Positions 11,581 to 51,200 of a stretch of DNA of 64,000 bases are shown here, one piece after another (position 1 is the stretch's first letter; each line of letters opens with the position of its first letter). The position numbers and the translations under genes are program-made. Source of the stretch: Macrostomum hystrix (taxonomy: Eukaryota; Animalia; Platyhelminthes); contig CATNEN010000030.1 of NCBI GenBank assembly GCA_950097015.1, forward strand, positions 4,030,001 to 4,094,000. Direction: 5' to 3'. The notes beneath the pieces were generated by a model. That model had not been told where the DNA came from. It made no database searches and was given only the letters and a program-made list of their open reading frames with translations.

Positions 11581-14167
11581 TTTTTAATTTTTTAACATCT
11601 CAGCTGTTTTGACTGAAGTCATGATATTAGATAAATTTCAGAGTGTCGCCCATAAGGTCTGTTTCGATTACTGCTCTATCTCCCTCCTGTCCCGCCAGCC
11701 TTCGCTACTCCGGCTTCCCCTCCCTCGATTTCCTTCTGATTGCCATTCAACGGTGCGTGCCGAATGCCAAGATTCTCCCCCACCTCCTCAGTGTCCTCCT
11801 GTCCCCCCCTCTCTCAATTTCTAGCAGGCTCCTGGGAATTGCAGTCCAAATGCAGCTGAAATGGGTGCACACACTAACCGGGACAGGCAAAAAAATATAA
11901 ATTATAAATGCATTATATAACATGATAGCCTATCCGCACGGCTCCCTCCTCCCCCCAGATACAACACAATCTTCATCCGCATGGCTCGGGGTTGCCGGCG
12001 GTTTGTGCTGAAAAGCTGGTGTACTTAAGCCTAGGCGGGGGTGGACTAGGCGAGTTGGGGGGGGGAGGAGGCGGTAGGCAAGGTGTGGCAGCGGAGTCAA
12101 ACACACGCGGGCAAACCAGCACAGGCCAAACTGTGGCACTGGTACACTGACTGCTCACTGATGCAAATCAGAAAAGCGGCAAGTGAAAGCGAGTAAATGA
12201 TATTAAGCCACAGACTTTGGTGAACAATAGAATGGAAATCAGGCGGCAATTCTGTTAGCCATATCACGGGTGAATTAACAGGCGCAGTGAACTTGGTAAA
12301 TATAATTTAGTTTTGCACTTGACTCCAATGCGGAAGCCCAGCGCGGGGATATGGATCCCCTTTCATTCGCTTCTGTTTTCCTTGTCAATTTATCAATCTG
12401 AGCCCCAAGCTCCGACCCAAGCTCGCCTCATCGTCTCTTCTCAGTCTCCTCTGTTTGCGTCGAGTGAATGCGGCGCTCCTTCCAGCCGCTGTGACAGCCG
12501 ACCCGGCTGGATTTCTGAGATCCGGCGGGGCCTCCGGCCAGTCGTCAGGAAGCCGCAGAAGCGGCAGTCGGCGGCAGCCCCAGGGCGGGTTGGGCCGTGG
12601 GGAAGAGAATGGGAAGTTCAGAGCCATCCAGAGACTGCTCCCAACTGTCTATTCCAACTGCCTTCCAAGTCAAGCTTCCTCCATCATCTTCTCTGCCTCT
12701 CGCCCACTCTCTCTGCCTGTCTCGGCTTCATTTCTAGCTTCAGATATTTTTCCTCACTTCTTCTCCTAGAAGTAACAGGCTCTTTCTCAAGTCTAGAGGC
12801 GTTCACCCCACTGCTGGGTCCATGACGGAAAAATGAGAGACAGAGAAGACGAAAAGAAGCCACACACAACTCAACTCAGACAACAATGGAAAACCACTGA
12901 AGCCACATTGAGACATTCTGGTGAGGCATGCCTAAGCGCGCTATTCCTAAGCTAGCTTGGCAACCAAACCTGAAATGTTTTTCCCGCTCTGAGGAAAATG
13001 CACTTTTTTAATTCTGAATTTTGCTTAAACTCTTAATTAAATCGAGCAAACCCCCTAGGCCATAGACATTAATGACCAAGAAACCGTTCGAGAATCGCGA
13101 ATTGTTAGGAACACAGTAATCCAGCAGTCGTCGTTTTGTCTATGGCCGTAACCCAAAGAAAATATATCGGGGTCTTAAGTCTGCTTTTTAGTTGTCTATG
13201 GTAATGTTTTCTACTTTTCAAACCTTTTGGAAGTCGTGTAAATTGTCTAAACTTTCTGTTACGCCCATAACCTACGATTATTTGAGCCCAGTGAGCACAG
13301 TGGGCCCAGTCAAAACGAGTTATCGATTTTTTTTCTTGTCCCGGTATGCCGGGCAATGGCTAGACAACCTTTTTACAACCGCTGATAAATCATTTCATGT
13401 GGGCACAATTCTGTAGCTGGACAATGCCTGCCCTGGGTGACCAGGCAGATGCTATAACTATGACTTGATCATTGCCTACCAATTTGGACCGGACTTAACC
13501 CCATCAAGGTTTCAGCAGCGAATATTGCCATCTGATTAGTTATCAATTGACCTAAAACGGACCTAAATTTCGAGCCTGCAGTTTCAATTGTTTATATTGA
13601 CTATTTTCGTAGCTATTTTTAGAACTGCCAAGTCAAACAGAGGTGATCAGCTTTTCAGCTGATCAGCTGAGTACAATGAAGCTAATATGGGATTTGACAG
13701 TTTGACGGAACAGTACATGGCAGATGCAAATGCTCTTGATTGATCTCAGCTGAAGTTATATTAAATTTCGCCTTCGAAACATGGCCCGGCAATGGGTGGA
13801 TTATAAATGAGTTTAGGAAGCAAGCGACAGCTAGGTCGAATAAAGTTTTCGCCCTTCATAATGCCCAGAGCCACTAATTGAGTTACTGGTATACGAATAC
13901 CTGTTACGGCCCAGCTGACCCCACAGCCCGCAGTCTGAATGCATGAAGTGTCAGAATCAATCAGCTTCATCTAATAAGAGAATGTCTGTGGGAACTGTGT
14001 TGCTCGTGACCGGCGCTCGATCACCGCCTAATTGAAGAAAGTGCTAAGCGAATGGATTTTGCTAGAGCAGAATTTTGGCGCATTGTATCACTATGCATTC
14101 GAATGCATACATTGAATTCAATTTTTAAAAGCCAACAAAACCACCAAGACAGACTAGAAATCAATAG

Positions 14168-17100
14168 ACTACCAATCGATAGCCTACCAAGACATACCAC
14201 CATTCGATAGCCTACCAAGACATACCACCATTCGATAGCCTACCAAGACATACCACCAATCGATAGCCTACCAAGTCATACCACCAATCGATAGCCTACC
14301 AAGTCATACTTCCAATCGATAGCCTACCAAGACATACCACCATTCGATAGCCTACCAAGACATACCACCAATCGATAGCCTACCAAGACATACCACCAAT
14401 CGATAGCCTACCAAGTCATACTTCCAATCGATAGCCTACCAAGACATACCACCATTCGATAGCCTACCAAGACATACCACCATTCGATAGCCTACCAAGA
14501 CATACCACCATTCGATAGCCTACCAAGACATACCACCAATCGATAGCCTAGCTACCAAGACATACCACCAATCGATAGCCTACCAAGACATACCACCAAT
14601 CGATAGCCTACCAAGTCATACTTCCAATCGATAGCCTACCAAGACATACCACCATTCGATAGCCTACCAAGACATACCACCATTCGATAGCCTACCAAGA
14701 CATACCACCATTCGATAGCCTACCAAGACATACCACCAATCGATAGCCTAGCTACCAAGACATACCACCAATCGATAGCCTACCAAGACATACCACCAAT
14801 CGATAGCCTACCAAGTCATACTTCCAATCGATAGCCTACCAAGACATACCACCATTCGATAGCCTACCAAGACATACCACCATTCGATAGCCTACCAAGA
14901 CGTACCACCATTCGATAGCCTACCAAGACATACCACCAATCGATAGCCTAGCTACCAAGACATACCACCAATCGATAGCCTACCAAGACATACCACCAAT
15001 CGATAGCCTACCAAGACATGCTACCAATCGATAGCCTACCAAGACATACCACCAATCGATAGCCTACCAAGACATACCACCATTCGATAGCCTACCAAGA
15101 CATACCACCAATCGATAGCCTACCAAGTCATACTTCCAATCGATAGCCTACCAAGACATGCTACCGATTGATAGCCTACCAAGACATACCACCAATCGAT
15201 AGCCTACCAAGACATACCACCAATCGATAGCCTACCAAGACATACCACCAATCAATAGCCTACCAAGACATACCACCAATCGATAGCCTACCAAGACATA
15301 CCACCAATCGATAGCCTACCAAGTCATACTTCCAATCGATAGCCTACCAAGACATACCACCATTCGATAGCCTACCAAGACATACCACCAATCGATAGCC
15401 TACCAAGACATACCACCATTCGATAGCCTACCAAGACATACCACCAATCGATAGCCTAGCTACCAAGACATACCACCAATCGATAGCCTACCAAGACATA
15501 CCACCAATCGATAGCCTACCAAGACATACCACCAATCGATAGCCTACCAAGACATACCACCAATCGATAGCCTACCAAGACATACCACCAATCGATAGCC
15601 TACCAAGACATACCACCAATCGATAGCCTACCAAGACATACCACCAATCGATAGCCTACCAAGACATACCACCAATCAATAGCCTACCAAGACATACCAC
15701 CAATCGATAGCCTACCAAGACATACCACCAACCGATAGCCTACCAAGACATACCACCAATCGATAGCCTACCAAGACATACCACCAATCGATAGCCTACC
15801 AAGACATACCACCATTCGATAGCCTACCAAGACATACCACCAATCGATAGCCTACCAAGTCATACTTCCAATCGATAGCCTACCAAGACATGCTACCGAT
15901 TGATAGCCTACCAAGACATACCACCAATCGATAGCCTACCAAGACATACCACCAATCGATAGCCTACCAAGACATACCACCAATCGATAGCCTACCAAGA
16001 CATACCACCAATCGATAGCCTACCAAGACATACCACCAATCGATAGCCTACCAAGTCATACTTCCAATCGATAGCCTACCAAGACATACCACCATTCGAT
16101 AGCCTACCAAGACATACCACCATTCGATAGCCTACCAAGACATACCACCATTCGATAGCCTACCAAGACATACCACCAATCGATAGCCTAGCTACCAAGA
16201 CATACCACCAATCGATAGCCTACCAAGACATACCACCAATCGATAGCCTACCAAGACATACCACCAATCGATAGCCTACCAAGACATACCACCAATCGAT
16301 AGCCTACCAAGACATACCACCAATCGATAGCCTACCAAGACATACCACCAACCGATAGCCTACCAAGACATACCACCAATCGATAGCCTACCAAGACATA
16401 CCACCAATCAATAGCCTACCAAGACATACCACCAATCGATAGCCTACCAAGACATACCACCAACCGATAGCCTACCAAGACATACCACCAATCGATAGCC
16501 TACCAAGACATACCACCAATCGATAGCCTACCAAGACATACCACCAATCGATAGCCTACCAAGACATACTTCCAATCGATAGCCTACCAAGACATACCAC
16601 CAATCGATAGCCTACCAAGACATACTTCCAATCGATAGCCTACCAAGACATACTTCCAATCGATAGCCTACCAAGACATACCACCAATCGATAGCCTACC
16701 AAGACATACCACCAATCGATAGCCTACCAAGACATACCACCAATCGATAGCCTACCAAGACATACCACCAATCGATAGCCTACCAAGACATACCACCATT
16801 CGATAGCCTACCAAGACATACCACCAATCGATAGCCTACCAAGACATGCTACCAATTGATAGCCTACCAAGACATGCTACCGATTGATAGCCTACCAAGA
16901 CATACCACCAATCGATAGCCTACCAAGACATACCACCAATCGATAGCCTACCAAGACATGCTACCAATCGATAGCCTACCAAGACATACCACCAATCGAT
17001 AGCCTACCAAGACATACCACCAATCGATAGCCTACCAAGACATGCTACCAATCGATAGCCTACCAAGACATACCACCAATCGATAGCCTACCAAGACATA

Positions 17101-18100
17101 CCACCATTCGATAGCCTACCAAGACATACCACCAATCGATAGCCTACCAAGTCATACTTCCAATCGATAGCCTACTAAGACATGCTACCGATTAATAGCC
17201 TACCAAGACATACCACCAATCGATAGCCTACCAAGACATACCACCAATCGATAGCCTACCAAGACATACCACCAATCGATAGCCTACCAAGACATACCAC
17301 CAATCGATAGCCTACCAAGACATACCACCATTCGATAGCCTACCAAGACATACCACCAATCGATAGCCTAGCTACCAAGACATACCACCAATCGATAGCC
17401 TACCAAGACATACCACCAATCGATAGCCTACCAAGACATACCACCAATCGATAGCCTACCAAGACATACCACCAATCGATAGCCTACCAAGACATACCAC
17501 CAATCGATAGCCTACCAAGACATACCACCAACCGATAGCCTACCAAGACATACCACCAATCGATAGCCTACCAAGACATACCACCAATCGATAGCCTACC
17601 AAGACATACCACCAATCGATAGCCTACCAAGACATACCACCAATCGATAGCCTAGCTACCAAGACATACCACCAATCGATAGCCTACCAAGACATACCAC
17701 CAATCGATAGCCTACCAAGACATACCACCAACCGATAGCCTACCAAGACATACCACCAATCGATAGCCTACCAAGACATACCACCAATCGATAGCCTACC
17801 AAGACATACCACCAATCGATAGCCTACCAAGACATACTTCCAATCGATAGCCTACCAAGACATACCACCAATCGATAGCCTACCAAGACATACTTCCAAT
17901 CGATAGCCTACCAAGACATACTTCCAATCGATAGCCTACCAAGACATACCACCAATCGATAGCCTACCAAGACATACCACCAATCGATAGCCTACCAAGA
18001 CATACCACCAATCGATAGCCTACCAAGACATACCACCAATCGATAGCCTACCAAGACATACCACCAATCGATAGCCTACCAAGACATGCTACTGATCGAA
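14168..18100. repeat. 28-bp satellite (atcgatagcctaccaagacataccacca), about 140 copies, 3.9 kb
   Basis: Long tandem array with recurring variants (a +tagc insertion; agtcatacttcca). Confidence 0.98.
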
Positions 18101-22254: not shown

Positions 22255-25200
22255 TTAGGACATTTGCAGCAGGTCGGAAATGGCCGCATCCTTATTACCA
22301 GCGTGCGCCTCCAGCACAGATTTGATGACTTCAGTGTCAGTGTCCGGAAACATCTCCTGCAGGCTGCCAATATCTGCGTCTGTGATTTCCACCGGCTGCT
22401 GCCGCCTTGCCTGCTGCTGCTGCACTTGCGGCATCTGCTGCGGATAGTAGCCACCCATCGGCACGTACTGCACCTGCGCGGAGTAGTTATAAACAGTCAA
22501 TAAACTTTTGTAAACACACAATAAACAGCTGTAAATTCATAATAAGGGGGCAGTAAGCAATAAAAATCTGGTGTAAAAACTCAGTGAAACAGCTGCAAAC
22601 ATTTATTAAACAGCTGTTGAACGCCCAGTAAACACTAAATAAACGTATGTAAAAAGTCAATAAATAACTCAAAACACTAAATAAACAGCTCTAAAATCTT
22701 AATAAACAGCTCTAAACACTGAGAAAAGTCTCAGAACACTAAATAGACAGCTCTAGAATCTTAATAAACAGCTCTAGACAGCGAATAGACGGCTCTAAAC
22801 ACTATATAAACAGCTCTAAAACCTTAGTAAACAGTTCTAAACCCTTACACTCAGGTTAAACAGCTTTCAAAATTCAATAATTCGGCTCTATCTACTAAAA
22901 GCTTTAAACACGCACAATAAATAGCTTTAAACGCTCAATAAATACTCAATAAACACAAACATTATTTTACAAGCTGTAACCCGGTTGAAAAACTGAGCGG
23001 GCCTCAGCGGGCTTTTGAGCGGGCCATTAGCGGGCCGAAGCGAATCGGCCCGTATTACAGGCCTTTTACAACAAATTGGCCCGCCGAAACCCGGCCCGCT
23101 CAGAAGCCTGATTAGCCCGCTAATGGCCCGCTCGAAACCGACCCGCAGATCGTCCCGCTGATTAGCCCGCTGGTTGGCCCACTCACTGGCCCGTTCTAAA
23201 CCGGCCCGCTGCACGGCCCACTGGTTGGCCCGCTCACTGGCCCGTTCTAAACCGGCCCGCTGCACGGCCCACTGGTTGGCCCGCTGGTTGGCCCGTTCTA
23301 AACCGGCCCGCTGGTTGGCCCACTCACTGGCCCGTTCTAAACCGGCCCGCTGCTCGGCCCACTAGTTGGCCCGCTGGTTAGCCCGCTGGTTGGCCCGTTC
23401 TAAACCGGCCCGCTGCTCGGCCCACTAGTTGGCCCACTGGTTGGCCCACTCACTGGCCCGTTCTAAACCGGCCCGCTGCTCGGCCTACTAGTTGGCCCGC
23501 TGGTTAGCCCGCTGGTTGGCCCGTTCTAAGCCGGCCCGCTGCACGGCCCACTGGTTGGCCCGCTGGGTGGCCCGTTCTAAACCGGCCCGCTGGTTGGCCC
23601 ACTCACTGGCCCGTTCGAAACCGGCCCGCTGCTCGGCCCACTAGTTGGCCCGCTGGTTAGCCCGCTGGTTGGCCCGTTCTAAACCGGCCCGCTGCTCGGC
23701 CCACTAGTTGGCCCACTGGTTGGCCCACTCACTGGCCCGTTCTAAACCGGCCCGCTGCTCGGCCTACTAGTTGGCCCGCTGGTTAGCCCGCTGGTTGGCC
23801 CGTTCTAAGCCGGCCCGCTGCACGGCCCACTGGTTGGCCCGCTGGGTGGCCCGTTCTAAACCGGCCCGCTGACTTGTCGTGAACTTGATAATCTTATCAA
23901 ATGGTGTATAAACTTGTACATGAAACTTTTGCAGTGTCTTGGCGCTCGGGCAATTATTCGATTTGTAGAGCACTAATGCTGTCCAATAAACTGTGCAGAC
24001 ACAAATGTCATGATGACATTTACTATGAGTGTGTCAAATTTATTATTTTTATCGCCTTATACGCCCACAGCAATTTGTATATCGCGCTACGTTGTGACTT
24101 ATGTAGTACTTCAGATATCACTCAGTTTAGTGTGAAACCTAAACCTTTGCTGGCTCTTGGGCTAAGATAGCAAACTGATGGGTCACTCGTTGTAGAATGT
24201 GTAGGTAGAATGATGGTACTTGTTAATTATCAATTTTAGTATCGCGTATCGTAGTATCGCGAACACCCGTCGCGTGACTCTACTTGATTGCCTTTTATCT
24301 GACTTGCAGAGTCTTGGCTTCTCCCCTCAGGCTGCTGCCAGGGCTGACTCCCGCTTTTTTCGGCAGCGTGTGTTCGCTGCAGTTTTCTAACCTCCGCAGC
24401 GTCCGTTATTATTATTATTATTAATTTTAGTATGGATTCTTTCCTAGTCACAAAGGTATTCAATTTCTTCATTTTCAGTCACTTGAACGACTAAAAGAGC
24501 TCGACAAGAAGTCAGCTGCCATCGCACGGCGCTTCAGTCGACTCAAAGAATCAGTGACACTCAGATTTAGACAGACGGTTGCGGCGACAGCCCGTCCGAC
24601 ACGAGCAGAAGCTTCAGCGAGCCACTTACCAACTGCAACTCGGACCACTCATGACGTACCAACCACTATAGAGCTGCCTAGCTCTATAGTGGCGCAACCA
24701 AGCAACAGTGTACCATTGGCAACCGGGGGATGTAGCAGTGGCGTCCAGACTCCCATGGTCGTCGAGCCTACCGGCTCGCAGTATTCAGAACCAGGCGAAG
24801 AAGCTCCAGATGACGACTATTGGAGTGGCGCTCCAATGGCGTTGGACGCCATCGAGCAGTGCGACGATTGTGAGGACTTTACTGAAGATGACCGCCCACC
24901 AGAGGATGAGGATGTACCATGTGTTGGCAATGGAGCCACCCATAACCCAGAAGCTATGGATATGCAGCCGCGTAGGAGAAATGGAGCCGCACTTTTCCTA
25001 GACTCTCCGTTGACCTACGATTCGTGTGCGGCCTATGTGCATTTGTTCAGCGAGCGCCAGTCTCTGCCAAGGAAAGGCATAGCTGACCTGCTTCGCCTCT
25101 TCCATGCAGCTGTGCCAGTCGGTAGCAACCTGCCTGGTGGTGTATATTTACTACGGAAAACAGTCCAGGCATTCGCGAACGACTTTACATCGCCACCCCG

Positions 25201-28200
25201 ATTGTTCTGTTCCTCATGTAGTGCTGAGGTCACATCAGCGCAGGCTCAGAACCGTGAAAATTGCACTTATTGTAATAAGGAACTGTCGCCGGCCGGCGTA
25301 TCCAAGTTTTATACCACCGACTTTAAATTGCAAATCAGACAGTTAATTGAACAGTGCCGGCTTCTACAGAGCGTAACTTTCCCTGTCGATTTGTCATCTG
25401 AAGATCGTAATTTTGTCTCAGTATCCAGTTGCGACGAGTATCGGCATTTCAAGCGTTCAATTCGGCTACACTTAAAGCAAGATCTGTCGTATACTGTGAA
25501 AATCGACGGCTTTCCAGTATTTGCAGACGCGCTGATAGAAATGTGCCCAGTGTACTAGAGTATCAACGAAGTACACGAAGCAATGAAATCGCGTTTCATC
25601 GTCGTATGTGGTTTCTGGGCTGCAAAGTCGAAGGTGAAGACATCCACCTTTCTTCCCGGCCTTGTTAGAGAGCTGAATGAGCTCCGGTCTATCGGGATCA
25701 CCTACAGCACAGGTGGTGGCCCTGAAGGCGACGCGCCTGGTCTTCTTCGACTGCACCCGTACCTTTTCGTCTTGGATGCCCCACAGAGAGCTGAGGTTGT
25801 CGGTCTAAAGCGTCACAATGCAGAGTTCGGCTGCGACAACTGCTATGTGAAGACGCAGAGATCATTGGGTGCCAATCGGTACCCAGTCAGTGGCAAATAA
25901 GAGGCGGTTGCGCTGGCAAACGCAGTCGGTTGCATTACACCGCACGCGCGTAGCTTGCGAGACACGCGCCTACTGGCGCACAACATCCCGGTCGGCAAGG
26001 ACAACTATCTGGGCGTTATGTGCGTGTGTTGGACCAGTTAAACGGCTTTGACTACATGCATGGGTGTCCACCGTGTCTGCTTCATCAGTGCTATCTTGGA
26101 CTCGTTCACTGGATTTTGAAACAGCTGTTTCATCCAAAGAAACCAGACATGTACCACGCGCATAACCCCAATCTAGTTTCGCGACGTGCAGATGTGGACC
26201 TTGCCTCTTCGCGAATTCACGTACCCTTGTCTCATCAACGTGCTCCCCGAAGTTTCCATGAACTCGGCATGTTTCGGGGCCATGAACTTGAGGCATGGTT
26301 AATCGTCTACGGCCCCATGTTGATGGAAGGCATCCTGCCCGACCGCTACTACTGGCACCTTCAGCTACTGTCCACGGCCATGTTCTGGCTTACATTGGAT
26401 GGAGCGCCTCTAATGGAAGTGATGAAAGCCAGCCGGCTTCTGCACTACTTTTACAGCCAGCTGCCTCAGATGTACTCCAACATGGCCCTTACGTACAATG
26501 CACACCAAGTTTGTGAGCACTTTGTATCGTACGTAACTTTATACGGGCCAATGTGGAGGATGTCTGCAGGCTTGTTTGAGTCGTCGCATGCGAATCTTCG
26601 CACCAAAATCCACGGCTCCAGGAATGTTGACACCGAAGTTGCCGGCCTCCTACAGCGCCAATTGGCGCGAAGGCAAATGATGGCCGAATTGCAACTCCCC
26701 AACATCTTCAGCGAGGGACCACCAAATGGTGAGGTTCAACTGCCGGATGGTGTGCGACTGCGCAATCCTATTCGTCGCCAATTGGCGGGCGGTGACACAC
26801 GGTATGGCAAAGCAGTACTGACCAGCGGGCTACGCATTGAAATATTCATGCCTCGCCTGATCCACCAGCGCGCCGCCTCGTGCTTTGTTGCTGTCCTCAT
26901 CCCTGACTGTCGTCAGCCGTTTGAATTCGCACGAATTGAGGAAATTTAACTCCGGGACAATTGCGCATGGGTTCGCCTACGCCGCCTTCTGACTGTGGAG
27001 CCGCACGAGGACAATCATCCGTTGTACCGCTTGACTGGCGAACCGGACCACTGCGGATGCTCAGTCGCACACGTTCGGCGCCTGCATACCAATCCATTTT
27101 GCGCAGTTGACAAATACTACTTCGAAATCCCTGCTAACGACGTACTCGCTACGTGTTGTGTGAACCACCGCTACGTAGCATTCCTTCCCCATATTCAGTT
27201 TTCTTACGCAGCGTGACAATTGTATGTACCAATTGTACGTAGGGTGTCCCAAAAAAGGAAAAATCGTTGCGCAGGCTTTCTGGTAAAACAATATAATTTC
27301 TAATATCTCACATCACTATAATAAGTAAACATTCGAAAGTTCTAAAGCTTTTTAAATTGAGTAGAAATGTCACATGTTCATTCAAAAGTTATGCCTACAG
27401 TTACAACAAGGGGTGAGGGTTAGAGGACACCCTCGCTCAAACGGGATGGAATATGCCATAATTTCTCTTTTCCAGCATGCCTTCTTCAACTGTGTTTTGC
27501 TTATACTGCTTATATATTGCTTATATTGCTTGTATTGCTATGTGGTATCATAGGAAATTATATTTATATTTAGTAACAAACGTCGGTCACATGACGTGTA
27601 TATCCATATGTTGCCTTCCTTTACGCCTTCATTTCTACCTGATAATATAGTAGCTTACAACCGGTACGCAGCTGTCCTTTGTTTCAATAATCGTGCACCT
27701 CCTTCGCATTAATTTCAGTCCACCCATCAGAATTACGAGATCAGAATGCCGGGCCAGCTACCATGCCCCACATGCAAGTCACGTGACTATTTCGTCTTCT
27801 CCGACTATTGTTTTTTTGTCGCTCCTCTCACTGCGATGACTGTGAGAATGCCATTCACGCAGCCCATGCCGAGCAGCAACGGCTAGTTAAATCGCGCGCA
27901 TCCAACAACTGGGACGACCAATGGAATGACTATTCCGCTCAGCAGGCCGAAGGCACCCTCGGCGCGACGGGTCATGTCGAGCCAACCGGCTCGGCAGACT
28001 GTCGCGCTACAGGGCCACGTCGGCGGCCGACGTCTACGGTGGCCGACGTCGATGACAGACGTTGGCCAGCGGAGCAATTGGCCAGCACAGTCTCCGTGGC
28101 GGCCTGTGCCGAGACGACCGGCTCTGGCATTTGCGATAAGTGCAAAGAACTATACGTACAAGGAAAAAACTGGCCATACTGCTGGCGTACAGATCTGCAG

Positions 28201-31200
28201 CCGTGGATGACTTCTGCTTCTGACAGACTACGGCAGTATGAGTCACAGCACGCCATACTATTTTCGGACAGCATGGGCAATGCCATCTTGACACTAGATT
28301 GCATCTTCATGTATCTGTGGTACCGGGATTGCGAAACAACGTGCTGGACTAATGCAGTCCGCACGTTGTACTCGCACCTCAGAGACAGCGGGATCGTAGA
28401 CGCGCCGGCTGGCGCGAAGACCGAGTTGTCGATTGACGTCCAAGCCATCTTCGACAGAGCAGTGAGCAACGTTAATGAGCACGCCGCATCCGCCGGTGTC
28501 ACGCCACCGGTGCAAAATCGGGTCAAGGTACTTAAAAAGTCCCGGCGACGTGGTCGAGCTGCCCATGAGTACCGTCTGGTGTACTTAGGGCATAAATCCA
28601 ATGTCCTATACACGACCCTGGCCGTCGCCATTGTAGGGACGTGGGCGGCCTATGCACGGTTTAAGTAGTCAATGTAGGCCACGTTAGTAATTCTGGAACG
28701 TGTAGTTAGCCGCAGCTTCAATCACTAGTAGTTTCTGCCGACTGCACCACAATTAAGAGTGTATGTCAGAATATAGTGTATATTGCATATGATTAGATTC
28801 CTCTTGAACCGTGCAAAGGCCGCCACGTTTTAGAAAGGGCAATTTCTCACGTTTCTGTACCATGCCAATGGGGACGTGATATGCAATAATTTCTCTTTTC
28901 CACCATGCCTTCTTCAACTGTGTTTTGCTTATATTGCTTATATTGCTTATGTATTGCTTATTGGTGCTTATATTGCTTATTTTGCTGATATTGCTTATAC
29001 TCCTTACATTGCTTATATTCCTTATATTGCTTATATTGCTTATATTGCTTATGTATTGCTTATTGGTGCTTATATTGCTTATTTTGCTGATATTGCTTAT
29101 ACTCCTTACATTGCTTATATTCCTTATATTGCTTATATTGCTTATATTCCTTATATTCCTTATATTGCTTATATTGCTTATTCGTGCTTGTATTGCTTAT
29201 ATTGTTTATATATTGCTTATACTGCTTAAATACATACATACATATATATATAGCACTTGTGCAGTATACAGGCCAATCAGGTCAATCCTTCATTCGCTAA
29301 TCAAGTTTGTCAAGCGTCTCTACTTACTAGTAACGTAATAGTAATATATATAAATTTATATAAATTGTTAACAATTTCCCAGTGCACAGCCCAGCAGCAT
29401 GGTATTCTCCAAGATCAGATGTATGTCCGACAAACTTGCATGTGGATAACAGACGACATCTACTTGCTTTTCAGACATGTCGAACGACCTAAGCCCTAGA
29501 GGAGTTAACTTCTCCGCCATCATGGATGACCTCCTTCGAGACGTGGCGCGAACTATGTCGCCGACTCTTGTCGACCTGGTCGGTTACCGGTTCTCAGCTG
29601 ATTGGGCAGAGTCACAGGATCCTATTTCTGACGCGAACGACGCCAATGACGATCAGCCCGCGGCCCGAGCCTGCCAGCTTCGCTATAACACCGAGACGCA
29701 GCTGGGTTCGCCGTCTCTGTTTGACGACATTGAGCCGGCTGGCTCGACTGCGAACGACGCCAATGACGATCAGCTTCGCTACAACGCCGAGACGCAGCTG
29801 GGTTCGCCGTCTCTGTTTGACGACATTGAGCCGGCTGGCTCGACTGCGAACGACGCCAATGACGATCAGCCCGCGGCGCGAGACTACGAGCCGGCTGAGA
29901 ACTTAAACAAACTGCGCGCGGAGTATAACCGCCTGCCTGACCCGCCGAATCAAAAGAATTACGCTTGCGTACGCGTTGTTCGAAAACGGGCGGATCGGCA
30001 GGAGCTGGACCCGCACTGCTGCCCCGAGTGTGAGGCATGGTTTTCGAATTTGTCGCCTCGTACAAAGCAGAGACGGCTGCAAGAGCACGGGCAGCACCGC
30101 AGTAACCAGCCTCACCAGACGCGCGACCCTAACTTTTTTAAAATTGAAATGCCTGACACTCAGCCAGAAGCGCCCTTTGAGGCCATGAGGTTTGGCAAGA
30201 GGCGAATGCGTCCACTGACGGGTGCTAGCGCCGGGCCGTCTAACACACGGGATAAGAAGCTGTAGGCAGCATAGGCTGTACCTCACTGTGAAATAATTGA
30301 CAATATTGTACTGTATATTTCTAGAAATACTTCTAGTCGAGCCAGCCGGCTCAATGTCATGAGTAGTGTAGCGAGTAGTACTATAGTAGCGTTTCTCTTT
30401 GAGTATGGGCAGCTCCCAGCAGTAGCTTGCCAGCTTCCATGCCATCTCCGTCTCATAGCTAAAATATATTTGCGTCGACTTGTCAGCGTCGATTGCACAT
30501 AGAAGGTACACAGGCGTTGCATTTTTCGTTATGGAATTCAATATCCTTCCTTACTTTCATTAGCATGACACTGACGCATGCTTGCGTCATATGACGCATG
30601 TCATATGAAACCGCATTTAGAAAGAAACCTTTCCCGCTCTCATTGCAGAATAATGGGAGACGGAAAGAAGACTGAAAGAATGAATAAGAAGAGGGACCAC
30701 GAGAAGCGGGCCGAAAAAGAGAAGCGGAAAGATAAAGATGCCGATACAACTGCAGCTGCTGACGTCCAGGAAAATCCTGCTGAGCTGAATGGCGACGACA
30801 GAGATGAGCCCACGACGCTCCCTAAAGGAAAGGCCACTTCAACGGCGCTAATCGGCTCCGATATGAGCACGGCCGTGTCCGCGGAGCCGACCGGCTCTAC
30901 TACGAAACGGAAAGCCGAAGCCAATGCCGAATCTCTATCTGACTCATCGAGCGAGCCAGATCTAGAGTCGAGAAAGGAGATGCGGCATCGCAATAGGGCA
31001 TTGACAAATGACACTGAGTCTACTGTATGAAGTGCATTTTATGTGCCTACTATGATTTGCTATTCGAGCCACCATGAAAAAATACTAGTATTCTATTTTA
31101 AGCTTAACATCTCTGTTTTTACCTGATCCAATGAAGTATATTCTAGGTTTTTATAAATAAACAAATCTTACGGCTCATCAGTCTGACTTGGAAATCTAAT

Positions 31201-32640
31201 GCTTATTTTGCTTCTTGATTCCATTTCTTTACTTATTTTATTTTGTTCGTTGAGCGGGCGAACCAGCGGGCCGGGTTAGAACGGGCCAATGAGCGGGCCA
31301 ACCAGCGGGCCAACCAACGGGCCGGTTTAGAACGGGCCAACCAGCGGGCCGGTTTAGAACGGGCCAACTAGTGGGCCGAGCAGCGGGCCGGTTTAGAACG
31401 GGCCAATGAGCGGGCCGATGAGCGGGCCAACCAACGGGTCAACCAGCGGGCCGGTTTAGAACGGGTCAATGAGCGGGCCGATGAGCGGGCCAACCAGCGG
31501 GCCAGCCGGCAGGCCGGTTTAGAACGGGCCAATGAGTGGGCCAGTGAGCGGGCCAACCAACGGGTCAGCCAGCGGGCCAGCGGGCCAGCCAGCGGGCCAA
31601 CCAACGGGTCAGCCAGCGGGCCGGTTTAGAACGGACCAGTGAGCGGGCCAACCAGCGGGCCCAGAAGCGGGCCGTAGAACAGGCCGATTTGAGAGACTCG
31701 TCGATTTGGAAAAATGAGCGGGCTTTTCTGACACGAAGTGGCCGATGAGCGGGCCAATTTCAATGGGCTAATCCAGTATTTTTTTCAACCGGGTAAACAC
31801 TAGACAAACAGTTGAAAACAATGCCAATGAGCTCGCATTCCTATCTCACCTGCGGCGGAGGTGGCAGATTCTCCAAGGTCAGCACCAGGCTAATCATGCC
31901 CTCCTTCTCGTCGCCCTGCCGGCCACTCAGTGGGTACCAGTCGTCCACAGTGAGGCCTTGGAATACGCGCGGCGGCAATTGAATTAGGCTCCAGGCGAAC
32001 CTATCATCCTCGGCGAAGGTCATCTCGTTGTAGATTTCAATGTTGATTGCGTCCACACCGTCAAGTAAATAGACGGAGAACGACTTGCTCCAGCGCGGAT
32101 TCTTTGAGCCGTTGACGGCTGTTGGCGTCTCGAAAATGTGATGGCCCACCGTGACGCGACAGTAGGGATCCATGCGGGTAATTCCGTAGTTCTTGGCCAG
32201 CTTTGCCTGTCACGCCAAGGAGGAGCGAAGGGTGTAGACAGAACCTACTTTGTGCAACTAAATAGATGACGAGGCATTCTAATACATGTAAAGTATTAGA
32301 GTTACTCCCGCCGTTTACCAGCTAAAATCTTATGAATCTCAAAACTTTTAAAGCTTTACGGAAACATCTTAAAAACTGCACTTCTCACCTGATTGACAGT
32401 GATCATTAGTCGGCCAATAGCGTTAGGCGGCACCTGGTAGAAAGCCTGCGGCGGGACAAATTGAGCCGCCTGCGGATAGACCACACGCTGCTGTCCAGCA
32501 GGAGGCGTGATTCTAAGAAAATCTGGCGACAGCTCGCCAAGAAACACCTGACGCCGGCGCGACTCACGAATTGAGTCAGCATCAGCACTGTTGGCAGGGG
32601 CAGCGGAGGCGGTGGAGGCTGACGATTGAACTTCCGTCAT
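22255..32640 (-). CDS. TOLLIP: Toll-interacting protein (TBD-C2-CUE), about 275 aa. Exons 32640-32389, 32206-31850, 22473-22255
   Basis: [47 protein letters not shown]...NPRW (C2 domain) and a C-terminal CUE domain [34 protein letters not shown]. All introns are phase 0 GT/AG. Confidence 0.96.
23003..23872 (+). repeat. Left subterminal repeat block of the transposon (ggcccgttctaaaccggcccgctg; GGCCCG core)
   Basis: Dozens of GGCCCG/GGCCCA motifs, mirrored in inverted orientation at the right end. Confidence 0.92.
24432..27216 (+). pseudogene. CMC/EnSpm DDE transposase, disrupted by 3 in-frame stops and 1 frameshift
   Basis: FCSSC..CTYC zinc finger, KIDGFPVF (D1), VLDAPQRA (D2), GCDNC (C2C), PPCLLHQCYLG, YNAHQVCEH and FESSHANL (E). 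Stops at 25556-58 (TAG), 25898-900 (TAA) and 26947-49 (TAA) are each followed by in-frame homologous sequence. There is a +2 TG slip at about 26024-26029. The start is uncertain. Confidence 0.88.
27241..27433. mobile_element. Possible degenerate Tc1/mariner-like MITE nested in the transposon
   Basis: 9-bp inverted ends AGGGTGTCC/GGACACCCT around an AT-rich core; no clear TSD. Confidence 0.35.
27746..28668 (+). pseudogene. Transposon cargo ORF2: Cys-rich putative zinc-binding protein, about 307 aa if a 1-nt T7 homopolymer frameshift (27811-27817) is corrected
   Basis: MPGQLPCPTCKS...YCFF joins CRSSHCDDC when one T is added; a further CDKC follows. The 286-codon downstream frame is open. The frameshift could be an assembly error. 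Confidence 0.6.
28925..29227. repeat. 9-bp microsatellite-like array (tattgctta) inside the transposon
   Basis: Tandem copies; a short version also occurs at about 27500-27540. Confidence 0.9.
29477..30265 (+). CDS. Transposon cargo ORF3, 262 aa, with a CtIP/Sae2 (RBBP8-type) C-terminal domain at aa 161-229
   Basis: NYACVRVVRKRADRQELDPHCCPECEAWF...LQEHGQHRSNQPHQTRDPNFFKIEMPDTQ matches the VVRK..R..L..H.C..C...(R)HR...NFW...P.TQ pattern of CtIP. The ATG-to-stop frame is intact and a splice acceptor lies 2 nt upstream. Confidence 0.85.
   Translation: MSNDLSPRGVNFSAIMDDLLRDVARTMSPTLVDLVGYRFSADWAESQDPISDANDANDDQPAARACQLRYNTETQLGSPSLFDDIEPAGSTANDANDDQLRYNAETQLGSPSLFDDIEPAGSTANDANDDQPAARDYEPAENLNKLRAEYNRLPDPPNQKNYACVRVVRKRADRQELDPHCCPECEAWFSNLSPRTKQRRLQEHGQHRSNQPHQTRDPNFFKIEMPDTQPEAPFEAMRFGKRRMRPLTGASAGPSNTRDKKL
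30653..31030 (+). CDS. Transposon cargo ORF4, 125 aa, Lys/Arg/Glu/Asp-rich, probably disordered and nuclear
   Basis: Open GC-rich frame after a cattgcag acceptor (30648), with basic clusters KKRDHEKRAEKEKRK and TKRK. No recognisable domain. Confidence 0.5.
   Translation: MGDGKKTERMNKKRDHEKRAEKEKRKDKDADTTAAADVQENPAELNGDDRDEPTTLPKGKATSTALIGSDMSTAVSAEPTGSTTKRKAEANAESLSDSSSEPDLESRKEMRHRNRALTNDTESTV
31253..31760 (-). repeat. Right subterminal repeat block of the transposon (agcgggccggtttagaacgggcc)
   Basis: Reverse complement of the left block unit. Confidence 0.92.
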
Positions 32641-45255: not shown

Positions 45256-47666
45256 ATGGCTAGCAGAGGATCTGCTCTTAGGCCGGGGACAGCGTCGCGC
45301 CTCAAGACGGCGATGCGGCCGGAGGCCAAGGGCGGCTCGGCAGTTGCCGCTGGTGCGAACGTTAGGGTGAGAATTCGCAATTATTGCAAGATACGATAAA
45401 GACAGTGTGACTTGCACCAAACTTGCTTGGGCAACGAGTAAGTAAATAATTTCTAACTTTTTTAAGTTCGAGGACCGGCCGATCACCCAGCAAGGCCTGG
45501 GTGGCCTGAAGACAGGCGGAAAGGGACTCAGGCGCCAGCACGAGGACAAAAGCTACTATATTGGCCTGCTGCGCTCCAAAATTAATGAGTTAGCCTCAGA
45601 AATTAGCCAGCTGAAGCAGGGCCTGGAGACGATGGAAGAGGAGAGCAGCAGCTTTGTGCAGTACGAGAAAATGGCCGAAACCCTGGCGGGCGACATCAAG
45701 GCGCTGCAGGGCGAGCTGGCCGACTATAACACGCTGGTGGACAAGCTCAACACCGATCAGGATGTTGCGAACATCCAGATGGACTGCGAGGAACTGCGCG
45801 GACAGAATGAGCGCGAAGAGCGCGAGCTGGAGCGAGTTTTCGGCGAGCGCAAGGAGGCCGAGGCCGCGGTGCGGGCTGTTGAGCATGAGCTGGAGCAGGA
45901 GAGGCGAATGGCGGACAGCCTGGTGCAGCAGATGCAACCAGCCCAACAGAGGCGCTACCAGCAGCTCAAAGAGGAGAACGGCCAGCTGGCCCGTCAGCTG
46001 GAGACCGGCCAAGCCGAATTGGAGGATCTTCGACGGCGTCGCGGACACCTGGAGGATGAGCTGGCGCCGAATCCTGTGAAGCAGGAGGCAGTGCGACTGT
46101 GCGAGCAGCTGCGCGAGGCCGAGGAGCGGCGGGACGCCTTGCTGGAAGAGGCGCGGGCGGCTGGCAACCCGCAGCAGGAGCGGGAGCGGCTGCTGGCACA
46201 GGTGAGAGAGAGGGGAGAGGCTGCTGGCACAGGTGAGGGAGAGGTGAGCGGCTGCTGGCACAGTTGAGGGAGAGGTGAGCGGCTGCTGGCACAGGTGAGG
46301 GAGAGGTGAGCGGCTGCTGGCACAGGTGAGAGAGAGGGGAGCGGCTGCTGGCACAGGTGAGAGAGAGGGGAACGGCTGCTGGCACAGGTGAGGCAGAGGG
46401 GAGCGGCTTCAGGCACAGGTGAGGGAGAGGGGAGCGGCTTCAGGCACAGGTGAGAGAGAGGGGAACAGTTGCTGGCACAGGTGAAGGAGAGGGTAGCGGC
46501 AGCAGGATCAGGTGAGGGAGAGGGGAACGGCTGCTGGCACAGTTGAGGGAGAGGGGAGCGGCTGCAGGAACAGGTGAGGGAGAGGGGAACGGCCTGCTGG
46601 CACCGGTGAGGGAGAGTGGCACTGGTGATTCAAACAGCTTTCGTATAGCTAAATTTGAAATCATTCTTCTTCGGTTTCTAAAAAATCTATATTTTAAGAA
46701 AAAAGAACAATATGAGTACCTTTTCTAATAGTAGCACTTTCAGTAGTACAGTGCTAAGAGGGCAACTTAAAATAGAATTAACGATAAGTGCAATGAGTAT
46801 TGCAAACCGGCAGGTGAAAGAGGACAACCAAGAGATTGGCACAATGGAGCGTCAGACAAGAGAGGCCGTTGAGCGCTTGCAGCTGGTGCAGAGCGAGATT
46901 CGCGCCACGGACCAGGACATCGAGGATGTGTCTGGCCAGCGCTCGCAGCAATACCGCGAGTTGCGCAAGCGCGAGGAACAAATGGACGAATTCCTCGGCG
47001 GCTACGATTCGACATTCGCCGGCGAGAAGGCCAAACTAAGCGACCTGGAGAGACAGGTTGTTGAGCTGCTGGACTTTATCACTCGCAGCATGGGTACGTT
47101 GAACCGTTGGCTCAAATAGATTGATGCAATAAATTATTGAACAATGTAAGCGTTCTAATATCGCCGAACCATTTCAAACCCAGGTCGGGTCAGCTCCCTG
47201 CCTTCAGCCACAGACTTTCGGTCGCTGCAGGACCAGCTGAAGTTTAAGGCCACGGAGAAGGACAAGGCGGACGTTACGGCAAACACTCTGAGCAGCGGCC
47301 ACGTGAAAGTGCAACAGGATCTGCTCAAGATTGACCAGCTCGAGCGGAAGACAACGGAGGAAATCGAATCGCTGAAGGAAAGAATCAGAACAATGCAGGA
47401 CGAGCTGGGCAGATACGGAAATATTGGCGGCCTGATGGCGGAGAGCGAGGCCAAGAGAGAGTCGGTGAGACAAGCGCTATCGGTGGATGGATGGATAGAT
47501 AGATAGATAAGTAGATAGATGATAGATAGATAAATAGATAGATAGATAGATAGATAGATAGAGAGATAGATAAGTAGATAGATGATAGATAGATAAATAG
47601 ATAGATAGATAGATAGATAGATGATAGATAGATAGATGGATAAGTAGATAGATGATAGATAGATAA

Positions 47667-47700
<34 letters not shown>

Positions 47701-47724
47701 GATAGATAGATGATAGATAGATAA

Positions 47725-47758
<34 letters not shown>

Positions 47759-47916
47759 GATAGATAGATGATAGATAGATAAATAGACAGATAGATAGAT
47801 AGATAGATAGATAAATAGACAGATAGATAGATAGACAGATAGATAGATAGACAGATAGATAGATAGATAGATAGATGATAGATAGATAGATGATAGATAG
47901 ATAAATAGACAGATAG

Positions 47917-47974
<58 letters not shown>

Positions 47975-48064
47975 GATAGATAGATAGATAGATAGATAGA
48001 CAGATAGATAGATAGATAGATGATAGATAGATAGATAGATAGATAGACAGATAGATAGATAGAT

Positions 48065-48207: not shown

Positions 48208-51200
48208 GATAGATAGATAGATGATAGATAGATAGATGGATAGATAGATAGATTTTGCAATATAAAGAAAACTAATCTATCGTTTTTCTTATTTCAACAA
48301 GCCGGTTTCCTTTTGGATGAAAATTTACAATTTATTTAAGTTTTACAAGTCGATAAAAAGATAATGCAAACTTTTGTTGAATTATTTTCAGCGCAATAAA
48401 GCTTTAAAGCAGGTTAATAAAACAAAGCATTTACGTTAATAATATGTTGACAGTTGTAGAGAAATGCGTTTTTATTTGCAGAGTAGAGGGCAGATATCGT
48501 TTAACAAAAATGCTACCTGTTGGCATCAGCTTCACGGTTGACGATAAAACTTGTACCGAATTCATGCTGAGTATAACGTTAAATTTCAATGAAAATATGA
48601 TTACCACGGTTAAGGTTCAGCGATAGTGTCAAATATTGTTAGTTTACACATTCACCACACTGGGCATTGAGTAGCTAAACAGTAGCCCATTGTGCAGCTT
48701 CCGTCGCTGAAGGCTGGGCAGAGCGGCAAACACCAGCAGGTAGAGAGACAGGCAGGCCAGCACCAATGCGGCGGCTCCGGCTGACAGGCAGGCCAGGACT
48801 AGCCGAGCTGTGTCTGCTGGCAGCCTGGCCGCGCCGACTAGAGCCATAAGGCCGAGTCCGGCGATGGAGATGAGCAACGCCACGGCCATGATGAGCAGTA
48901 CAGTGAGTAGTCTGGTTAGGCCAGTAAAGGACCGCAGTCGGACGAGCTCGTGCGTCAAGCTTAGAGTTGTCATGCCCGGTTCTACTTTCAACGATTCGAT
49001 TTTTGTCTTGGCTTGAGACTCTGCTTTTCTTTGGCTATTCGGTTCAGCCTGGCCTCCGTCAGTGACCTCATTTAAGACTGGTCGGCTGTGCTTTGTTGTG
49101 TTCATTGCGCAATGAGCGTGGGGTGGTTTGCCATTGCCTGCTCTCACCTCACCCATTCTACCCTCATTCTAAGCTAGCCTACCTGCGCTTTCGAGTTTTT
49201 ATTATCGATTTTTCGTCATCGATTGTGTTGCGTAATGGCTTGACTGCGCCACGTCTCTCTCTCGCCGAGCCTGCACTGCCTTCCTACGAAGCCATTCTCT
49301 CTCTTCCCCCTCCCCACTTTTGGTTCATATTGGGTGCCAGGGCACTTCACATTTTAAGTCCAATCTAGCCGTTTTTGTATCAAGATTTCAAGCATAAAGA
49401 TGCTTTGCTTTGCTTAAACAATTTAAAAAATTTGGTTCATTTTTGCATAGCTTTCGTAAAGGCTTCTCCTGTTACCCGTGTTTCATTATTTTAGTTTAGA
49501 TGCTTCCAATGCATATCAATGTTCTCATGCTTACTCATACTTTTTATACTTCTCATGTGTCCTCACTACTGATTCTTCTCATGTGTCCTCAATACTGATT
49601 CTTCTCATGTGTCCTCAATACTGATTCTTCTCATGTGTCCTCACTACTGATTCTTCTCATGTGTCCTCAATACTGATTCTTCTCATGTGTCCTCAATACT
49701 GATTCTTCTCATGTGTCCTCAATACTGATTCTTCTCATGTGTCCTCAATACTGATTCTTCTCATGTGTCCTCAATACTGATTCTTCTCATGTGTCCTCAA
49801 TACTGATTCTTCTCATGTGTCCTCAATACTGATTCTTCTCATGTGTCCTCACTACTGATTCTTCTCATGTGTCCTCAATACTGATTCTTCTCATGTGTCC
49901 TCAATACTGATTCTTCTCATGTGTCCTCAATACTGATTCTTCTCATGTGTCCTCAATCCTCATTCTTCTCACGTGTCCTCATTTCTCATGGTTCTCATGT
50001 GTCCTCAATCCTCATGGTTCTCATGTGTCCTCAATACTGATTCTTCTCATGTGTCCTCAATACTGATTCTTCTCATGTGTCCTCAATACTGATTCTTCTC
50101 ATGTGTCCTCAATACTGATTCTTCTCATGTGTCCTCAATACTGATTCTTCTCATGTGTCCTCAATCCTCATTCTTCTCACGTGTCCTCATTTCTCATGGT
50201 TCTCATGTGTCCTCAATCCTCATGGTTCTCATGTGTCCTCAATACTGATTCTTCTCATGTGTCCTCAATACTGATTCTTCTCATGTGTCCTCAATACTGA
50301 TTCTTCTCATGTGTCCTCAATACTGATTCTTCTCATGTGTCCTCAATACTGATTCTTCTCATGTGTCCTCAATACTGATTCTTCTCATGTGTCCTCACTA
50401 CTGATTCTTCTCATGTGTCCTCAATACTGATTCTTCTCATGTGTCCTCAATACTGATTCTTCTCATGTGTCCTCAATACTGATTCTTCTCATGTGTCCTC
50501 AATCCTCATTCTTCTCACGTGTCCTCATTTCTCATGGTTCTCATGTGTCCTCAATCCTCATGGTTCTCATGTGTCCTCAATACTGATTCTTCTCATGTGT
50601 CCTCACTACTGATTCTTCTCATGTGTCCTCACTACTGATTCTTCTCATGTGTCCTCAATCTTCATTCTTCTCATGTGTCCTCAATACTGATTCTTCTCAT
50701 GTGTCCTCAATCCTCATGGTTCTCATGTGTCCTCAATCCTCATGGTTCTCATGTGTCCTCAATCCTCATTCTTCTCACGTGTCCTCATTTCTCATGGTTC
50801 TCATGTGTCCTCAATCCTCATGGTTCTCATGTGTCCTCAATCCTCATGGTTCTCATGTGTCCTCAATCCTCATGGTTCTCATGTGTCCTCAATCCTCATG
50901 GTTCTCATGTGTCCTCAATCCTCATGGTTCTCATGTATCCTCAATACTGATTCTTCTCATGTGTCCTCAATCCTCATTCTTCTCACGTGTCCTCAATCCT
51001 CATGGTTCTCATGTGTCCTCAATCCTCATGGTTCTCATGTATCCTCAATCCTCATTCTTCTCATGTGTCCTCAATACTCATGGTTCTCATGTATCCTCAA
51101 TCCTCATTCTTCTCATGTGTCCTCAATACTCATGGTTCTCATGTGTCCTCAATCCTCATGGTTCTCATGTGTCCTCAATACTCATGGTTCTCATGTATCC

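Follow-up and report, generated by a model that had tools for sequence, protein, structure and literature searches.

A cut-and-paste transposon family of Macrostomum carries a CtIP/Sae2-tail gene that probably derives from a host repair protein

Why should a transposon carry the C-terminal domain of a host DNA repair protein? This question is raised by a stretch of 64,000 nucleotides (nt) of the flatworm Macrostomum hystrix (assembly GCA_950097015.1, contig CATNEN010000030.1, positions 4,030,001 to 4,094,000), here called the window, to which all positions below refer. It contains an 8.8-kb element (22980-31793) bounded by 13-bp terminal inverted repeats (TIRs), and this element contains an intact open reading frame (ORF) of 262 amino acids (aa). 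An earlier inspection of the letters alone, the sequence-only reading, had placed the ORF at 29477-30265 and interpreted it as a CtIP/Sae2-like end-resection domain captured by a DNA transposon; the coordinates proved exact, on the plus strand and from ATG to TAG. CtIP/Sae2 is the factor through which a break becomes committed to resection, and it also opens ends that are blocked or capped by hairpins. Transposons rely on the host to mend their breaks, and whether a cut-and-paste element gains a copy is decided by the repair chosen at the empty donor site; few cases are known of elements with a repair-pathway component of their own.

Residues 148-247 of the ORF were confirmed as a true SAE2/CtIP C-terminal domain. 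The Pfam profile PF08573 (SAE2/CtIP C-terminus), proposed as a check in the sequence-only reading, matched the ORF with E 3.6e-4 and 22.0 bits, above the gathering cut-off of 19.8 bits; since this margin is thin, the domain was checked by independent searches. An exhaustive phmmer search of 1.84 billion representative proteins gave 26 matches at E<=1e-3 (query aa 142-262), nearly all of them aligned at the extreme C-terminus of the target, and the best one (E 2.4e-26) was P0001, a protein of Macrostomum lignano. The SAE2 model was passed by nine of the ten matches scanned; two of these nine, P0006 and P0007, carried CtIP_N too and are thus canonical CtIPs. A gapless BLASTP match of 71 aa joined aa 159-229 with P0006 (24/71 identical, E 4e-13), in agreement with the gapless CtIP alignment of about 20/69 given in the sequence-only reading.

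The segment aa 148-247 contains the motifs YN.LP.PP, VVRK, CPEC, (R/Q)HR, PNFF, DTQ and GKRR.RPL, and all those previously named (VVRK, CxxC, HR, NF, P-TQ) were found. In a 20-sequence alignment, the tail retained all nine invariant columns (VVR, R, L, CxxC, HR, F) and six of the eight near-invariant ones; V167, V168, R169, K170 and C182-P-E-C185 fall in invariant columns. The window copy reads Q206-H-R, whereas R was read at the same codon (30093 A>G) in all four sequencing runs that were aligned to 29340-31200; the family therefore has RHR, and Q206 is private to the window copy. The language-model (atlas) neighbours of the ORF were SAE2-domain clusters. An AlphaFold model of the tail (predicted local distance difference test, pLDDT, 70; predicted template modelling score, pTM, 0.30) was compared with the Swiss-Prot predicted models, a structure comparison having been proposed in the sequence-only reading, and the five best Foldseek matches were RBBP8 C-termini; their template modelling scores are low because the domain is flexible and its model of that quality. 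No solved structure of a CtIP tail was found in the PDB by phmmer and profile search, so comparison was possible against predicted models only. An exact look-up of the 262-aa ORF returned no record, and no further copy or fragment of it was found in the window.

The origin of this domain was sought among host CtIPs. The closest relative, P0001 (55% identity over 100 aa), is M. lignano PAA54340.1, BOX15_Mlig004387g2, and its cluster mate P0027 is Mlig004387g1 (accessions of Mlig004387, PAA54340.1 and PAA88737.1). The two Mlig004387 loci are syntenic: they lie on separate contigs of GCA_002269645.1, each with an acetyl-CoA synthetase gene on one side and an EMP24 gene on the other, and the gene consists of three exons with introns filled with minisatellites. 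P0027 shows the canonical CtIP layout: a coiled coil at the N-terminus, then a long linker of low complexity, and last the Sae2-like tail. At the M. lignano loci neither a TIR nor a transposase ORF was found, nor any DNA similarity to the element, and P0001 was ruled out as an element-borne copy on these grounds. Mlig004387 is an ordinary host CtIP. The gene model of P0001 lacks the coiled-coil first exon present in P0027, and the introns and flanks at these loci (L001 10163-12500 and 13860-18440; L002) are nearly all minisatellite arrays with a period of 15-32 nt.

A maximum-likelihood tree grouped the element tail with P0001 (support 98/97), as sister to P0002 (87/91), a metagenome protein of 315 aa that combines a coiled coil with a SAE2 domain; the idea of a captured host module is upheld by this position next to the M. 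lignano CtIP tail. Unlike other animals, the element and M. lignano tails have in common the derived traits CCP.CEAWF, IEMP and GKRR.RPL, and in both of them F replaces a near-invariant W. At the column of human T847 the element reads TRDPNFF and the M. lignano host protein QAPNFF, in place of the STPENFW of other CtIPs, and P0002 keeps TP. Because the site is missing from the M. lignano host CtIP too, the absence of this cyclin-dependent kinase (CDK) site is a lineage trait and not a rewiring by the element. TQ stands in the element tail where the M. lignano host protein and P0002 have TP. As determined by BLASTP, aa 148-247 alone are homologous to the host protein, and the homology ends close to where the host gene has its stop. 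The N-terminal 147 residues are acidic, repeat-rich and new relative to host CtIP: no CtIP_N match was obtained with Pfam and no similarity to the P0027 coiled coil with BLASTP, and the idea that aa 1-60 preserve a trace of the N-terminal helix of CtIP was dropped for this lack of similarity. The shared derived traits and the tree point to capture of the tail from a macrostomid-type CtIP, and the change of 45% of the tail residues, together with the loss of all nucleotide similarity, indicates that the capture is old. The ORF is thus an old capture of a host CtIP tail and not a host exon.

That the ORF lies inside a TIR-bounded DNA transposon was borne out. The sequence CCCGGTTGAAAAA has just two matches in the window, inverted to each other, versus 0.06 expected, and TAA adjoins each of them, which indicates a 3-bp target duplication. 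The left and right subterminal arrays contain inverted pairs that are 75-88% complementary, and the longer ORFs of the element are all on the plus strand. The transposase is a remnant in three pieces. An in-frame stop lies within a conserved block, in accordance with the dead transposase of the sequence-only reading, and the reading frame shifts between 25900 and 26020. The third piece had atlas neighbours at 0.91-0.96, including clusters with Transposase_21, DUF4218 and Plavaka, and DGF..PVY, CxxC and DYMH blocks were read by eye in the translation. No transposase domain was matched in Pfam at E<=10, and a word-indexed search with the transposase piece was also empty; the assignment to the CMC (CACTA/Mirage/Chapaev) group therefore rests on the language-model and structure-neighbour leads and on the motifs read by eye. 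The 3-bp duplication, the TIRs and the subterminal arrays agree with the CMC/CACTA class proposed earlier, but the termini do not, being CCCGG and not CACTA. The element is considered CMC-like with moderate confidence. PIF/Harbinger, raised by the TAA duplication, was dropped, as there was no DDE_Tnp_4-type match and the transposase neighbours are of CMC type. The window copy is dead and decayed, with the transposase stop, the frame change and private changes in the CtIP-tail ORF, one of which turns a near-invariant Arg into Gln.

The CtIP-tail ORF is cargo of a multi-copy family and is present in several copies and under several organism labels. In sequencing runs under three coded organism labels, some of them from libraries guessed to be RNA, the share of ORF words was 0.25-0.63 and that of transposase words 0.47-0.55. 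All four aligned runs yielded contigs 95-99% identical to the window copy in which the ORF was contiguous with the element flanks, and a 2.4-kb organism-B contig spanned the ORF to 31171. Confinement of the ORF to this one copy, which was part of what would have refuted the sequence-only reading, is contradicted by the contigs of these four runs, which cover three organism labels.

Differences between copies were examined for signs of constraint. Length variants of the ORF were of -141 nt (a 142-nt skip with 1 nt between), -204, -213 and +3 nt, all in frame, and the in-frame deletions of other copies fall in the region of the 96-nt tandem duplication. The 17 best-supported substitutions among those listed comprised 9 synonymous and 8 non-synonymous ones, for an expected synonymous fraction of 0.27. 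Five of the 17 were private to the window copy, every run reading the other base; one was synonymous and four were non-synonymous (V35I, Q206 for the R of the family, T215 for K, F239 for L). The remaining 12 varied among runs, with 8 synonymous and 4 non-synonymous changes (ratio of non-synonymous to synonymous rates, dN/dS, about 0.15; binomial p 0.005). A split of this kind between private and shared changes would be expected of a gene that was constrained in transposing lineages and decayed after insertion, and the CtIP-tail gene looks selectively kept in those lineages.

The best explanation of the locus, to which we give slightly less than an even chance, would be a decayed copy of a Macrostomum-type cut-and-paste family with a selected accessory gene made from a host CtIP tail, the product of which would be directed to MRE11-RAD50 at breaks made by the transposase. 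The Sae2-like C-terminal domain of a host CtIP would have been joined to a new acidic, repeat-rich N-terminal half, the resulting accessory gene would have been kept by selection in transposing lineages, and its protein is predicted to bind host MRE11-RAD50 at these breaks. The part of CtIP retained is the CxxC, RHR and PNF...P.TQ region, without the N-terminal oligomerisation coiled coil, and the CDK phospho-site at the human T847 / Sae2 S267 column is absent. This region is the one through which CtIP/Sae2/Ctp1 makes contact with RAD50/MRE11. Human CtIP aa 849-888 are enough to bind RAD50, with no need for prior phosphorylation, and MRE11-RAD50-NBS1 (MRN) is stimulated in vitro by a 15-aa peptide from the Ctp1 C-terminus (PMC11260466). 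A slight preference is given to a minimal, cell-cycle-independent activator, which would clip blocked or hairpinned ends and favour sister-templated repair, so that the donor copy would be restored; a competitor that shields the ends may be nearly as likely. More tentative is the role itself, that of a transposon-encoded cofactor or antagonist of MRE11-RAD50, a monomeric CtIP tail without a T847-type CDK site that would steer the repair of its own breaks; it is held to be possible, at clearly less than even chance.

Several results weigh against a selected and MRE11-RAD50-directed gene. The in-frame indels are weak evidence, because they occur in repeats with unit lengths that are multiples of three. 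The synonymous excess comes from 12-17 differences among those listed, with 59 others beyond them; the ORF substitutions are not phylogenetically independent, and the density of listed differences is equal in the ORF and its flanks. In contigs of RNA-guessed libraries the ORF had a depth of 12-35, the non-coding flanks were covered too, and the contigs were colinear over 29473-29474; with flanks covered and contigs colinear with DNA, a discrete mRNA is not established. Word-indexed protein searches with the whole ORF and with the tail gave no matches, the ORF-bearing public contigs being likely too short for the index. Human CtIP aa 790-897 alone gave no support of single-strand annealing in cells, where the oligomerisation domain matters, and phosphorylation of T847, a site absent from the element tail, is needed for MRN stimulation (PMC7261161).

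The rival that survives best is passenger cargo, a transduplicated fragment of host CtIP that brings no benefit and whose ORF is open through recent amplification; it is less likely than a selected gene but a serious contender. Captured gene fragments are common in DNA transposons, as in Pack-type CACTA and MULE elements, the ORF is short, and copies 95-99% alike have had little time to break it. The same density of differences in ORF and flanks, and a captured piece that lacks the oligomerisation domain required by CtIP in cells, would also be in accordance with a passenger. However, every family-invariant residue and the frame were kept despite 55% identity and the lack of DNA similarity, which is unexpected under neutral drift. 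The variants shared among runs show a synonymous excess and the private changes of the dead copy are mostly non-synonymous, among those listed, and the ORF starts at an ATG of its own, encodes a new N-terminal half and stops at the position seen in the host gene. Even as a passenger only, it would be an unusually old and well-kept transduplicate.

Alternatively, the CtIP tail could serve through its RHR/CxxC residues as a DNA-binding accessory protein of the element, comparable to TnpA and unrelated to MRN, an option judged improbable, as is the proposal of its targets, either the subterminal repeats or the 17-nt motif GAGCCGG(C/T)TGGCTCGAC. CACTA-type elements need a further protein to bind their subterminal repeats, as established for En/Spm, and the repeat arrays of this element are very large. 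The 17-nt motif, with the palindromic core GAGCC-N4-GGCTC, is present in five strong and two weak copies in both orientations, versus an expectation of 0.07 per window. Against this option, DNA binding by CtIP is directed by structure and is not known to be sequence-specific, and the 286-aa and 150-aa ORFs of the element could themselves serve as TnpA. CtIP tails do bind DNA, according to PMC6344080 and PMC11317151, but the RAD50-contacting PNFF..P.TQ is conserved as well as the DNA-binding residues.

A host exon, belonging to the sole host CtIP or to the surrounding gene and lying between the repeats by chance, is very improbable. The AG acceptor-like site 2 nt before the ATG and the single organism-B contig that diverges exactly at 29473 would be in its favour. 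Nevertheless, the element lies inside an intron of a minus-strand gene with a C2 domain, which looks Tollip-like, and the ORF is antisense to it; the ORF exists in multiple copies and all the aligned runs show variants of it, a separate complete CtIP exists at the two syntenic M. lignano loci, and an RNA-library contig is colinear across 29474. The exon origin that the sequence-only reading had itself named as one way in which it could fail is contradicted by the antisense orientation and by the separate full CtIP of M. lignano. Splicing into the AG before the ATG was dropped as a candidate, as one RNA-library contig was colinear across the site. In the organism-B contig, from a DNA-guessed run, the match begins at 29473 at the AG site and the 69 letters before it are unrelated; this may be a copy that was rearranged or processed. 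Chance resemblance of a random open frame, for which the Pfam score of just 2 bits over the cut-off and the two empty word-indexed searches could be quoted, is negligible in view of the best exhaustive match (E 2.4e-26), the 26 matches at 1e-3 or better with 9/10 of those scanned passing SAE2, the gapless alignment, the invariant residues, the atlas neighbours and the Foldseek RBBP8 matches.

The element protein was compared with known systems. With host CtIP/RBBP8/Sae2/Ctp1 it shares VVRK, CxxC, (R)HR, PNF(W/F), P.T(Q/P), the basic GKRR.RPL tail and the same end point, and with the M. lignano host CtIP in particular CCP.CEAWF, F for W and the lack of TP at the human T847 column. In contrast to host CtIP, it has no coiled-coil/tetramerisation domain and no long linker but an acidic, repeat-rich N-terminal half instead, and its gene is single-exon, multi-copy and located in a transposon; TQ in the element, as opposed to TP, further separates it from the M. 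lignano protein. Transposons with captured host accessory genes of replication or repair include Helitrons with RPA-like proteins, Academ with an XPG-like nuclease, MULE/KI-MULE with an ULP protease, and the gene fragments of Pack-MULE and Pack-CACTA. Here too a host piece lies between TIRs beside a transposase and spreads together with the family, but the cargo is a cofactor of MRE11-RAD50, the nuclease that deals with blocked and hairpin ends. With CMC elements, including En/Spm, the element has in common the duplication of 3 bp, the short TIRs, the long subterminal arrays and the placement of several ORFs on the same strand, and its transposase neighbours carry Transposase_21, DUF4218 or Plavaka; it differs from them in the CCCGG termini, the lack of a Pfam transposase match and an accessory gene unrelated to TnpA. 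In TRF2 iDDR and the MIN motifs of Rif2/Taz1, a small protein or motif at the CtIP-binding surface of RAD50 also controls how particular DNA ends are processed (PMC11260466). Those are unrelated to CtIP in sequence, whereas the element protein is a homologue of the activator, with RAD50 binding predicted. Further regulators of a similar kind are the factors of viruses and phages that target MRN or SbcCD.

No report of a CtIP/Sae2 domain as transposon cargo was found in the literature searched on CtIP/Sae2 and transposons. Capture of host repair or replication genes is known as a kind; so far as can be judged, the novelty lies in the CtIP cargo and the pathway that it targets. Steering of MRN, if true, would restore the donor copy through homologous recombination or protect the excised ends, and would be a direct case of a transposon manipulating double-strand-break repair choice with a stolen host module. 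If functional, this natural minimal CtIP (tail only, without oligomerisation domain or T847-type CDK switch) could show what the Sae2-like domain does alone, and could help to study how repair pathways are controlled in Macrostomum, a model of regeneration and germline in which transgenesis is available. Short SAE2-only proteins (183-229 aa) in several clusters, mostly labelled Arthropoda, were the nearest atlas feature neighbours of the ORF; stand-alone CtIP-tail genes in arthropods, possibly carried by transposons, are conceivable from those clusters.

The coordinates of the element and its surroundings are collected in Table 1.

Table 1. Features of the element and of the adjoining host gene in the window.
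Feature	Position	Strand	Remarks
CtIP/Sae2-tail gene, intact 262-aa ORF	29477-30265	+	ATG to TAG
Segment homologous to host CtIP tail, aa 148-247	29918-30217	+	tblastn and BLASTP, alignment, tree, Foldseek
AG acceptor-like site (ttgcttttcAG)	29473-29474	+	ends 2 nt 5' of the ATG of the CtIP-like ORF
96-nt tandem duplication	29675-29866	+	98% identical; in acidic N-terminal half of the CtIP-like ORF
Left target-site duplication TAA	22977-22979		reads ...GTAA then CCCGG; equals TAA past right end
Left TIR CCCGGTTGAAAAA	22980-22992	+
Left subterminal array	23000-23885		GC-rich 12/51-bp repeats (GCGGGCC-type); inverted relative to right array
Transposase remnant, three ORF pieces	24554-25558, 25583-25900, 26020-26949	+
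In-frame stop within conserved transposase block	25556-25558	+	..IDGFPVFADALIEMCPVY before the stop, SINEVHEA.. after it
94-nt direct repeats	27438-27531 and 28866-28959		84% identical; flank the 286-aa ORF
Second element ORF, 286 aa	27808-28668	+	Cys-rich; without known family (Pfam)
9-bp microsatellite (TTGCTTATA)n	28876-29338		direct-repeat family; 5' of the CtIP-like ORF
Left arm of perfect 24-nt inverted pair, GACATTGAGCCGGCTGGCTCGACT	29822-29845	+	just 5' of the CtIP-homologous segment
Right arm of 24-nt inverted pair	30335-30358	-	70 nt past the stop codon of the CtIP-like ORF
Third small ORF, 150 aa	30578-31030	+	Lys/Glu/Asp-rich; without known family (Pfam)
17-nt motif copies	24761-24777, 27976-27992, 28402-28418, 29732-29748, 29828-29844, 30336-30352, 30884-30900
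Right subterminal repeat array	31229-31757		direct-repeat families and inverted pairs
Right TIR	31781-31793	-
Right target-site duplication TAA	31794-31796
Host exon adjoining the insertion, C2 domain	31841-32173	-	Pfam C2 2.7e-9

Each of the 94-nt direct repeats is followed by the (TTGCTTATA)n microsatellite, which suggests that the module of the 286-aa ORF was also inserted or duplicated as one unit. The indels listed among copies in the 150-aa ORF were mostly in frame. The 24-nt inverted pair, whose core is the 17-nt motif, flanks exactly the captured CtIP segment, and a 402-nt deletion in an organism-B contig starts at 30343, within its right arm. Within ORFs the 17-nt motif encodes EP(A/T)GS(T/A); it may serve in recombination or capture, or be bound by a protein, and the 24-nt pair and the recurrent motif together give a hint of how modules enter or leave the element. 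An opposite-strand joint 30521/30641, seen in RNA-type and DNA-type runs of organism C, points to a small inverted-segment variant 3' of the ORF in another copy.

On the left side of the insertion, a coding-looking flank (22400-22470, minus strand, read from the sequence) resembles a Gln/Pro-rich exon of the interrupted gene, and an N-terminal exon of this gene with ..GELSPDFLRITP.. was noted in the region 31841-32640 (minus strand). Elsewhere in the window, the stretches 14001-18000, 46001-48000 and 50001-52000 showed extreme strand skew (GC skew -0.52 to +0.37, with matching AT skew) and are probably long satellite or low-complexity arrays.

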